Shown piece by piece: positions 9,245 to 57,985 of a stretch of DNA of 64,000 nt. The stretch's first letter is position 1, and every line of letters starts with the position of its first letter. The notes under the pieces were generated by a model. That model was not told the DNA's origin, did no database searches, and was given only the letters and a program-made list of their open reading frames with translations. The DNA lies in the sequence record NC_019526.1; one strand, given 5' to 3'. Made by a program: the position numbers and the translations under genes.

Positions 9245-9490
9245 ATGATACTATCTAAAGAAGAACAACAAATTGTTGCACAAGCAATGAGTCTTTTGCA
9301 CTTAACCACTGACAAAGAAAAAGATTTATTCAATCGTCTTAAAACTGGGGTTGATACAGTTCAACGTATAAAAGAGAGTAATGAACGTAAAATGAAATTC
9401 CATGCATCACTCATAGCTATGTATGGTCCAAATGCACATTTACATTATAATGATTATTATCAATACTGTGAAAAAAATGGTTTTTGGTGA
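9245..9490 (+). CDS. hypothetical protein
   Basis: MILSKEE N-terminus shared with 8330..8611. Confidence 0.75.
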   Translation: MILSKEEQQIVAQAMSLLHLTTDKEKDLFNRLKTGVDTVQRIKESNERKMKFHASLIAMYGPNAHLHYNDYYQYCEKNGFW

Positions 9491-9534
9491 AATAAAAGAT
9501 TGACAAATAACATTAGTACTGTATAATGTTTACA

Positions 9535-9621
9535 ATCAAGACAAGATTAGTTCAGTAGGTAGGAACCGTTCTATGTGTATCTAAGAATAAGTTGTGGTTC
9601 GATTCCCTATCTTGTCTTGAT
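9535..9621 (+). ncRNA. tRNA-like RNA with 12-bp acceptor stem and 11-nt anticodon loop
   Basis: ATCAAGACAAGA/TCTTGTCTTGAT stem, D arm GTTC-AGTAGGTAG-GAAC, T loop GG-TTCGATT-CC; directly after TTGACA-16-TATAAT (9500-9527). Confidence 0.65.
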
Positions 9622-9625
9622 TTCA

Positions 9626-9815
9626 GTGGTGAGCTTTAGTGATACATCTATTGACGATGCGGGTGTGAGGGTGGCTACCTCAGCAGTGGCGAATTATGTA
9701 GCAACTGTGCTGAAAGATGCTAAGACAGTTCGATTCTGTCCACCCGCCGCACTAAAGGTAGGGTACTAAGTACCAGAAACTAACACGAGGCAGTCGGAAT
9801 ATACGCCTACACCAC
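9626..9815 (+). ncRNA. about 190-nt RNA with an embedded tRNA-like domain (9659-9747)
   Basis: Acceptor GCGGGTG/CACCCGC, perfect T arm GACAG-TTCGATT-CTGTC, enclosed by CTTTAGTG/CACTAAAG and GTGGTG/CACCAC stems. Confidence 0.6.
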
Positions 9816-9846
9816 AATTACTTTTAATTTAATTGAGGAACAAAAC

Positions 9847-10194
9847 ATGTCAGAATCACTTGTAAATAAAAACTCTCAAGGATTTGTAATTGCAAATAAA
9901 AACCCTCAAGGGTTTGTAATTATTGATCTGAATCTTAGCAGCGGGAGAATGTTCCAAAGTACTGATGCATGTATGCAATTTGACTTCCTCGGTTATGAAA
10001 TTAGTGTTAGTACAGGTGGTTCAGTACTACAAGGTGGTTTTCTTCAGGAAATTTTAGTTACTGATCCAGAAGAACGTCCTCACTTCATTCAGGGGTCGGT
10101 GCAAGATGCTATTATGTTTGTTATTCAGCGTGAACAAAATAGAAACTTTAATGAATTTACTAATGCAATGAGTAATAAGATTGAAGAAGTTTAA
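9847..10194 (+). CDS. hypothetical protein
   Basis: GAGG SD; 10-aa tandem duplication at N-terminus. Confidence 0.75.
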   Translation: MSESLVNKNSQGFVIANKNPQGFVIIDLNLSSGRMFQSTDACMQFDFLGYEISVSTGGSVLQGGFLQEILVTDPEERPHFIQGSVQDAIMFVIQREQNRNFNEFTNAMSNKIEEV

Positions 10195-10438
10195 AGTTAA
10201 TGTTAAGTACTTCACATTCTATAGTTTAGATCCAAATGATTGTCATCCAGGATTTTTTGAATGCACCCTAATCAGGGAGAATGAATGTGAAGTACTATAC
10301 TTTATATATAAAATGTATAACAAAATAGTTGTTTATGATTATAGAAAAAGAAATCCATATCCAGGAGAAACCTTATATTTCAATCAAACAATTATTGACT
10401 CATACAGTATAATTTGTACTGGTGAATATGATGAATAA
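10181..10438 (+). CDS. hypothetical protein
   Basis: Packed + strand ORF. Confidence 0.7.
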   Translation: MKKFKVNVKYFTFYSLDPNDCHPGFFECTLIRENECEVLYFIYKMYNKIVVYDYRKRNPYPGETLYFNQTIIDSYSIICTGEYDE

Positions 10439-57597: not shown

Positions 57598-57894
57598 ATG
57601 CAAGACAAATCAATTCATGTTCAAGTAGTTTCAAGCCGTGGCTATGACGATGTAGTACTGGATATCATGGTTAAAGATCTGCGGGACTATGCAATCATTG
57701 CACGTCATATCATGGTTAACTCCATTTGTATCAGTACTGGTGCTGATATGGAAGAAAACCGCTTACATATAGAAGAACATCTATACAAAGCACGCATGAA
57801 TGACAGCAGTGTATTCATCATTGAAGGTGCCGAGGGTAAAGAGTATACTGTATACCTTCGCCAGTACCAGGAAGTAGAAAAAGAAGAAGATTAA
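57598..57894 (+). CDS. acidic hypothetical protein
   Basis: AGGAG SD; the track start lies in a Chi-containing 5' hairpin. Confidence 0.75.
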   Translation: MQDKSIHVQVVSSRGYDDVVLDIMVKDLRDYAIIARHIMVNSICISTGADMEENRLHIEEHLYKARMNDSSVFIIEGAEGKEYTVYLRQYQEVEKEED

Positions 57895-57985
57895 TTTATA
57901 AAAAGTACTTGCTTTAATAGTTCAGTACTGTATACTGTTTATCAAGGGGAAGCAATAGTGCCTCCCCACTCATAGGAGATACACC

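Follow-up and report, generated by a model that had tools for sequence, protein, structure and literature searches.

A conserved predicted RNA family of phage tRNA clusters, with a four-way-junction core and a variable tRNA-like insert

Introduction

YrlA RNAs (RF02553; Chen et al. 2014, PMC4201824) resemble the family reported here in size (about 100-200 nt), in occurring in phages, and in combining a terminal stem with a tRNA-mimic module that has D and T arms and an elbow. The YrlA Ro60-binding helix carries the conserved motif GNCGAAN0-1G, and in M. smegmatis the tRNA-like domain of YrlA is cut by RNase P and CCA is added to it (PMC4201824). GOLLD and ROOL RNAs are found close to the tRNA islands of phages, and tRNAs sometimes occur within the GOLLD linker (bioRxiv 10.1101/2024.12.08.627333). 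RNAs shorter than 200 nt are also able to form large assemblies (bioRxiv 10.64898/2026.07.01.735769). Phage T4 has rnaC and rnaD, small stable RNAs at the end of its tRNA cluster, and rnaC ends in a tRNA-like T arm. In tmRNA, again like the present element, a tRNA-like domain is joined to further structured RNA.

The stretch of DNA analysed here (the window) is 64,000 nt of sequence record NC_019526.1. Window positions 9450-9900 correspond to positions 195450-195900 of JQ513383, the Klebsiella jumbo phage vB_KleM_RaK2, at 100% identity. A preliminary description had proposed a tRNA-mimicking multi-domain RNA, or a processing-regulated pre-tRNA, at 9626-9815. We report that this element belongs to a real and conserved family, which is described neither in Rfam 15 nor in the papers searched. 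The unit that is conserved is not the tRNA-like domain but the outer scaffold, in which stems P1-P4 form a four-way junction of about 80 nt.

Results

Parts of the element

Positions 9626-9815 are read here as the predicted gene, on the + strand, of a structured non-coding RNA about 190 nt long. The RaK2 annotation has no feature at these positions; a pseudo-tRNA and ORF257 are annotated on either side. The parts of the element and its neighbours are as follows.

9500-9527, + strand: sigma-70 promoter, consensus TTGACA-16-TATAAT, 12 of 12 hexamer matches
9541-9616, + strand: upstream pseudo-tRNA, annotated tRNA-OTHER (pseudo), 30.4 bits on the Rfam tRNA model
9626-9631, + strand: 5' strand of P1, GUGGUG, pairing with CACCAC at 9810-9815
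9632-9641, + strand: junction AG and 5' strand of P2, CUUUAGUG (stem 9634-9641), part of a near-invariant GAGAGC/GUGAGC block
9645-9659, + strand: small hairpin P2a, CAUC-UAUUGAC-GAUG, abutting the acceptor stem
9659-9748, + strand: whole tRNA-like insert
9659-9665 and 9741-9747, + strand: acceptor stem, GCGGGUG / CACCCGC, 7 perfect pairs, covarying
9667-9681, + strand: D arm with loop GUGGCUA at 9671-9677 (GG present), stem covarying
About 9682-9712, + strand: arm at the anticodon position, a long, irregular hairpin (about 30 nt) capped by a loop of about 10 nt
About 9713-9723, + strand: long variable region
9724-9740, + strand: T arm, GACAG-UUCGAUU-CUGUC, with a 5-bp covarying stem and a UUCRANY loop
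9748, + strand: discriminator C9748, followed by GCA, not CCA
9750-9757, + strand: 3' strand of P2, CACUAAAG, pairing with 9634-9641
9758-9774, + strand: junction GUAG and P3 hairpin GGUAC-UAA-GUACC (9762-9774), 4 of 4 P3 pairs covarying
9775-9787, + strand: near-invariant single strand J3/4, AGAAACUAACACG, in which UAACACGA is (nearly) invariant across the aligned members
9788-9809, + strand: P4 hairpin AGGC(A)GU ... ACGCCU (9788-9808), then A; stem sequence invariant
9810-9815, + strand: 3' strand of P1, CACCAC, the end of the unit; pairing with 9626-9631 in the minimum free energy (MFE) fold and by covariation
9847-10194, + strand: ORF257, with a ribosome-binding site (RBS) and an ATG at 9847 after the A/U-rich tail of the element

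The geometry given in the preliminary description was recovered. The perfect 7-bp acceptor stem and canonical T arm lie within 9659-9747, the long variable arm was seen at about 9713-9723, and the non-canonical 10-nt anticodon loop caps the long irregular hairpin. Nesting in two outer stems (9634-9641/9750-9757; 9626-9631/9810-9815) is present both in the sequence and in the MFE fold, as are the two extra hairpins at 9762-9774 and 9788-9808. The description had also named this the most GC-rich stretch of the region; G+C rises to 0.51 at 9650-9799, versus about 0.2-0.4 in the flanks.

Transcription from the promoter at 9500-9527 probably runs through the pseudo-tRNA, the element and ORF257. The pseudo-tRNA is outside the family unit, and phage K64-1 is without it. 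In K64-1-type relatives (L249:340-410 compared with window 9536-9625) there is no pseudo-tRNA and a promoter stands directly before the element. The RBS of ORF257 is located outside the structure of the element. At the start of ORF257, a near-identical 30-nt unit occurs twice (aaataaaaac(t/c)ctcaagg(a/g)tttgtaatt), and the 30 nt at 9883-9912 are missing in a wastewater relative; this is a length-variable tandem repeat, and it has a small hairpin at 9900-9915.

Two reading frames overlap the element, an ORF at 9575-9769 and K64-1 gp323. A coding interpretation was rejected because the homologues carry indels of many lengths and compensatory changes in the stems; gp323, a 47-aa CDS across the element, is probably spurious.

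Folding and covariation

The MFE fold of the element had an energy of -61.1 kcal/mol (z = -2.07; 5 of 200 shuffled sequences folded as well), which is a modest score for a single sequence. The acceptor stem was recovered in it, together with the two outer stems and the two 3' hairpins. Covariation, which the preliminary description had named as a check, was found at two scales. In a MAFFT alignment of 5 homologues made with no structural input, 13 of 40 predicted pairs showed both-sided compensatory changes. In the family-wide alignment of 41 distinct sequences, both-sided changes were present in 30 of 40 pairs and standard pairing in 94.4% of cells, versus 70.4% after shuffling and 35-48% with slid partners; none of 500 shuffles reached the observed values. 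The family-wide alignment was fitted to the covariance model's own structure and so favours that structure; the structure-blind result, at a size of only 5-6 sequences, therefore serves as the independent support. The pairing of the element is far beyond chance, and more than 50 phage and prophage sequences keep the fold through compensatory changes.

Covariation was seen in P1, P2 and P3. The outer pair of P1 appears as AU, CG or GC and its third pair as AU or UA, and both-sided changes occurred in 8 of 9 P2 pairs. P4 was without covariation and was conserved in sequence, with AGGCG/CGCCU identical in 38-40 of the 41 distinct sequences; this invariance suggests that the sequence itself is recognised. 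Inside predicted pairs, G-U cells outnumbered A-C cells (39 versus 13), and GNRA and UUCG loops occur on the + strand. Both facts place the RNA on the + strand.

Searches and family distribution

Covariance model R1 was built from the structure-blind alignment of five homologues, and R2 is a core-only model. R1 was run on loci fetched by pattern scans of IMG/VR (loci from all sources are cited by L numbers) and gave 45 matches of 33 to 192 bits, 81-237 nt in length. The RaK2 element scored 188.8 bits on R1 and 88.6 bits on R2, values that are partly by construction since RaK2 is in the seed alignment of both, and independent members scored 44-130 bits on R1. The RaK2 element has the P1-P4 junction of the new family with GAGAGC, GGUAGC, UAACACGA and AGGCG/CGCCU.

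BLAST located the element in other RaK2-like phages and, at 70-84% identity, in unrelated phages, nearly always within tRNA gene clusters and either mislabelled or unannotated. The homologues fall in Eneladusvirus, Mimasvirus, Stephanstirmvirinae, Ounavirinae, Demerecviridae and other groups:

Yersinia fHe-Yen9-04, Pectobacterium CBB, Yersinia P778 and Aeromonas phiA050
Klebsiella and Citrobacter Stephanstirmvirinae
Erwinia and Salmonella Ounavirinae (phiEa21-4 group)
Pantoea AAS21 and Erwinia KEY (Demerecviridae)
Serratia and Pectobacterium phages, and Erwinia Faunus

All 6 complete phage genomes searched (RaK2 and five others) contained a single copy. Two family copies about 200 nt apart were observed on one 67 kb IMG/VR contig (L154:8870-9080 and L154:9286-9457). 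The second of these has no P3 hairpin (CUCAAGAAAACUUAACACGAGGCG); a core can therefore be recognised even where P3 is missing.

Bacterial genomes seldom carry the element. When 185,579 species genomes were scanned for the motif, 3 true members came out; R1 matches them, and each is followed by a tRNA-Pro and is probably in a prophage. In a sample of 151 genomes from the order to which the Bosea hit belongs, R2 matched only the query genome itself (G002). On one E. coli chromosome, R2 matched a prophage fragment only, and no host homologue was found there. This partial core homologue (L245:3964-4045; E. coli ATCC 11775, NZ_CP033092.2 1536800-1536881) is in a lambdoid prophage, scored 43.4 bits on R2, and keeps P3, J3/4 and P4 (GAAGCCGUGAAAGCGGAGGAAGUAAAACGAGGCGUCGGUACACGCCUA) with no clear P2. 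It lies between the antiterminator Q and holin genes in the late-promoter leader, with a terminator-like hairpin downstream, and a BLAST search of 5,426 complete E. coli genomes detected it in 119. No description of the motif was found in the literature, whether by subject or by motif letters, in searches whose scope stopped short of a 2023 catalogue of about 10,000 viral candidate RNAs.

Invariant core and variable insert

The core is marked by near-invariant junction strands, GAGAGC, GGUAGC and AAcUAACACGA. On the 5' side, the consensus is a P1 of 5 bp with GAG/CUC or GUG/CAC, then AG, then a P2 of 8 bp that covaries freely across the family (CUUUAGUG, CUUCAGAG, CCGAUGGG and others). The middle reads GG, an insert of 5-145 nt, GC, the second strand of P2, G(U/G)AG and the P3 hairpin, which is capped by a GNRA tetraloop in about 19 of 41 distinct members. 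The 3' side consists of AG(C/A)AA(C/A)UAACACGA, P4 as AGGCG-loop-CGCCU, A and the second strand of P1. The J3/4 strand between P3 and P4 is 13 nt long and invariant (AAcUAACACGA).

The insert sits at the distal end of arm P2 and is hypervariable. Full tRNA-like inserts were present in RaK2, Yen9-04, CBB, AAS21 and Stephanstirmvirinae, and these share a long variable region, CUGAAAGAUGNUA, from which it follows that core and insert have been inherited together. A T loop of 7 nt fitting UU(C/U/A)(G/A)A(N)(U/C) was found in 28 of 41 distinct members. At the place of P2a, a hairpin of different sequence was seen by eye in Yen9-04, CBB, phi1_175008, phiEa21-4 and AAS21. In G+C-rich members the insert is a small Y-shaped 'elbow', and in L123 its arms are permuted (T arm, capped acceptor stem, D arm). 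L134 (81 nt) and L112 (104 nt) have no tRNA-like part; the domain is dispensable, since L134 exists without it.

Anticodon loops were non-canonical nearly everywhere, with about 10 nt in RaK2, a UUCG-capped hairpin in phi1_175008 and 5 nt in phiEa21-4. The Rfam tRNA model scored 50.2 bits on the phiEa21-4 insert and 43.1 bits on that of L028, and ARAGORN called tRNAs in only a handful of inserts, e.g. Leu(UAG) in AAS21 and Val(UAC) in L028. To judge from its sequence, the RaK2 insert is a class-II-like tRNA mimic and non-decoding; the long irregular hairpin at the anticodon-arm position means that it would not be able to decode. By eye, G3-U70, the alanine identity pair that tmRNA also uses, was seen in about half of the enterobacterial-phage inserts (acceptor stems of the inserts in L003, L006, L024, L246 and L247), and the acceptor stems of RaK2, Yen9-04 and CBB have G3-C70.

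The preliminary description had placed the tRNA-like domain at the centre with the outer stems as its wrapping. That order is reversed, since the core is invariant and the insert can be missing, as in L134. Its wider proposal of a tRNA-mimicking multi-domain RNA holds in that the 190-nt unit is conserved and the acceptor, D and T arms and elbow are kept; the emphasis on the tRNA-like domain does not.

Comparison with described RNAs

No tRNA or tmRNA gene was called by ARAGORN in the whole window, and Rfam 15 gave no match in the window at the gathering threshold. At E<=10, Rfam matched the upstream pseudo-tRNA only, with nothing on the element or on 9659-9747, and the minimal 81-nt member likewise had no match in Rfam 15 at this threshold. 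On the element in five homologous loci, permissive Rfam searches returned only weak tRNA, tRNA-Sec and tmRNA matches, all to the inserts. The RaK2 insert does have a 7-bp acceptor stem, a 5-bp T stem with a UUCRANY loop and GG in the D loop. An ordinary tRNA was nevertheless rejected, as no detector matched and the anticodon position is occupied by a hairpin of about 30 nt, not a 7-nt loop with U33 and purine 37. Unlike tmRNA, the element has no tag reading frame and no encoded free CCA end; the single Rfam tmRNA match, of 18 bits, was in one relative.

Homology to T4 rnaC/rnaD was rejected. R1 had no match in the T4 tRNA region at E<=1 and the core motifs are absent from it. Unlike the family, rnaC and rnaD have no GAGAGC...UAACACGAGGCG...CGCCUAC core, are matched by neither covariance model, and do not nest a full tRNA-like domain within outer stems. 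The likeness to T4 RNA C/D drawn in the preliminary description therefore does not extend to membership, given the missing core and the lack of a covariance-model match.

Membership of the Y-RNA type, the other analogy drawn there, fared no better. At E<=10 the Rfam YrlA model had no match on the element, either in RaK2 or in 5 homologous loci; the search was working, since the same model found weak YrlA-like elements elsewhere in L003. The GNCGAAN0-1G motif was not found by eye in the 5' strand 9626-9658. TROVE/Ro60 (PF05731) had no match in the complete RaK2 genome, and the control genomes were matched. The terminal module of the family is a four-way junction with invariant sequences of its own, not the Ro60-binding helix of YrlA. 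The RaK2 insert differs as well, with its arms in normal order (acceptor, D, anticodon arm, variable, T) and hanging from an arm of the core, whereas the YrlA module is joined through its anticodon stem. The permuted arm order of L123 is exactly that of YrlA, going by the Rfam consensus topology.

Two tandem YrlA matches were found in the same tRNA cluster as, and upstream of, the family member of phi1_175008 (L003:171-286 and L003:321-423; PQ360875 about 57660-57912). They scored 36.4 and 34.3 bits on the Rfam YrlA model (gathering score 69), share the complete YrlA arrangement of T arm, capped stem and D arm, and overlap small 'hypothetical' CDSs annotated on the opposite strand. These may be divergent Y-RNA-like genes of a Stephanstirmvirinae phage.

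GOLLD and ROOL share with the family a location in or beside phage tRNA islands and the lack of a known protein partner or function, and GOLLD also has a conserved part with a variable linker that sometimes holds whole tRNAs. They differ in length (580-800 nt or more) and in sequence and structure, and neither had an Rfam match here. Multimeric cages have been shown for GOLLD and ROOL.

Four resemblances noted by eye were dropped, none being conserved family-wide. These were the 3' tail as boxA, the P4 loop as a CsrA site, GGUAGCC as 16S helix 45, and P2 as an 11-nt GAAA receptor.

Genomic placement and neighbours

At about 15 loci in tRNA arrays, 7-18 nt separate P1 from the end of the tRNA before it, and the next tRNA begins 6-18 nt after the element. 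With this tRNA-like spacing the element fills a slot like a tRNA gene. A tRNA-Pro lies 11-101 nt downstream in at least 5 distant lineages, namely an IMG/VR contig (L134), Limoniibacter (L203), Bosea (L226), an Acidobacteriaceae MAG (L173) and the phiEa21-4 group (L246). At L134:4599-6001 (minus strand) the minimal core is followed by the tRNA-Pro and then by an RtcB RNA ligase (Pfam 443 bits). A general association with RtcB was rejected; it adjoins L134 yet is no general neighbour, and RaK2 has none.

In K64-1, where the element reads as a stand-alone gene, the promoter TTGAAC-17-TATAAT ends 7 nt ahead of AAGUGGUGAGC, the first bases of the element, so the predicted transcription start coincides with the 5' end of P1. 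K64-1 and L061 both have promoter matches ending 7-8 nt ahead of the first base of P1, from which the starts are predicted. An intrinsic terminator follows the L145 member by 10 nt, a fresh promoter stands right after the element in L063 and phiEa21-4, and an RBS and ATG lie within about 20 nt after it in L088 and L090. Promoters, terminators and strand-specific conservation suggest that the element is expressed. A single search of public runs gave wastewater contigs only, which cannot show RNA ends, strand or level; they cover parts of 9625-10198, and K64-1-type upstream sequence was seen among them. The order of promoter, element and ORF257 in RaK2, and the RBS and ATG after the L088 and L090 members, make a cis role as a 5' leader possible in some hosts.

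All-against-all clustering of the flanking ORFs of about 48 loci gave no protein neighbour conserved beyond close relatives. Annotation with Pfam and PHROGs named unrelated functions, including terminase, ribonucleotide reductases, integrase, HD phosphohydrolase and baseplate proteins. Since no neighbouring protein is conserved, the partner is more likely to come from the host than from the phage.

Discussion

Starting from the observed structure, conservation, modularity, genomic placement and strand, we propose that the element is a stable phage small RNA acting in trans, in which the core binds a conserved host component and the tRNA-like arm is a handle. We hold this reading with about even confidence. 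The RNA would be made early from a host-type promoter, or be cut from tRNA arrays by the enzymes that process its neighbours, and would accumulate as a stable species that acts in trans. The invariant junction and P4 would bind the putative conserved host component. The tRNA-like arm may give access to tRNA-type handling (RNase P, RNase BN/Z, CCA addition, T-loop modification and nuclease protection); alternatively, it may tether the core to tRNA-binding machinery. The two-module logic matches, by analogy, that of YrlA Y RNAs and of GOLLD RNAs with tRNAs in the linker. The expression level, the handling by RNase P, RNase BN and CCA addition, the binding partner, the biological role and the benefit to the phage are the parts that we infer. 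More speculatively, and with a low probability in our estimate, the core could be a new phage RNA machine (a ribozyme, an RNA-only assembly, or a high-affinity sponge for a universal host factor that handles or targets tRNA) in which P2 docks interchangeable tRNA-like cargo.

The preliminary description's second suggestion, a tRNA cassette or processing-regulated pre-tRNA, would make the core halves a leader-trailer clamp and the excised RNA of about 90 nt the product. The 7-bp acceptor stem, 5-bp T stem and U at -1 would be good geometry for an RNase P substrate, and some inserts do score as tRNAs (phiEa21-4 at 50.2 and L028 at 43.1 bits, with ARAGORN calls in AAS21 and L028). CCA is not encoded in the RaK2 insert, and T4 tRNAs without an encoded CCA need RNase BN. 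A cassette leaves L134 (81 nt) and L112 (104 nt), which have no insert, unexplained, and conservation is highest in the core. The anticodon loop is replaced or departs from the canonical form (RaK2, phi1_175008, phiEa21-4), and the core keeps its unpaired nucleotides invariant, although a clamp alone would not need this. We consider this explanation unlikely, though it may hold for members with a near-canonical insert.

Somewhat less likely again is a cis-acting leader, which would provide antitermination over untranslated tRNA arrays or set the stability or translation of ORF257 mRNA. The element does follow promoters directly in RaK2, K64-1 and L061, heads tRNA runs in phiEa21-4 and prophage-like loci with the tRNA-Pro 11-101 nt downstream, and precedes an RBS and ATG by about 20-30 nt in RaK2, L088 and L090; its partial homologue occupies the leader between Q and holin in late transcripts of E. 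coli lambdoid prophages. But the downstream feature varies (tRNA, ORF, terminator or new promoter), with a new promoter after the element in phiEa21-4 and L063 and a terminator in L145. Many copies are in mid-array with a tRNA on both sides, and the RaK2 RBS is not within the structure.

Among phages of 35-64% G+C, the unpaired nucleotides of the junction hardly vary, as might be expected if the junction were a ribozyme site or the RNA were a subunit of an RNA-only assembly displaying tRNA-like cargo. The frequent GNRA loop of P3 could dock, the tRNA-island habitat and embedded tRNA are common to GOLLD, and assembly by RNAs below 200 nt is known (bioRxiv 10.64898/2026.07.01.735769). Against such a catalytic or self-assembling RNA, Rfam 15 gave no match to a ribozyme or ornate RNA, the minimal member at E<=10 included, and no self-complementary loops were noticed. 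We regard it as improbable.

A Y-RNA-like partner of Ro60 (Rsr), with the outer stems binding the Ro60 ring and the tRNA-like arm as effector module, would account for the YrlA-like two-module design with its tRNA mimic and for the YrlA-like permutation of L123; lacking a YrlA match at E<=10 and GNCGAAN0-1G, and with TROVE/Ro60 and RtcB both absent from RaK2, it is very improbable. A decayed tRNA pseudogene flanked by chance complementarity, to which other tRNA relics nearby in RaK2 and the failure of the insert in tRNA detectors might point, is contradicted by the comparative data, in which the flanks are the most conserved part and covary over more than 40 distinct sequences of unrelated phages, and is scarcely credible.

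Structured RNAs that await explanation, among them GOLLD, ROOL, YrlA and T4 rnaC/D, are increasingly being found in phage tRNA islands. The family described here is compact, with a core of about 80 nt, and sharply defined; the phages that carry it infect Enterobacterales, Aeromonas and G+C-rich (54-64% G+C) hosts. An artefact that recurs in phage annotations also finds its explanation here: the insert is labelled tRNA-OTHER, tRNA-Undet, tRNA-Gln or tRNA-Phe, and small hypothetical CDSs are sometimes overlaid on the element. Natural variants run from members that have no insert, through those with a mini-elbow or a permuted mimic, to a near-complete tRNA, so the purpose of the tRNA mimic is directly testable. 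If the core is an RNA machine with P2 as its docking port, the family would represent a small 'tRNA scaffold' system of natural origin, which might also serve in counter-defence. If, as we favour, the core binds a host factor, or if it binds a defence nuclease, the family would add an RNA-based mechanism of host takeover or counter-defence.
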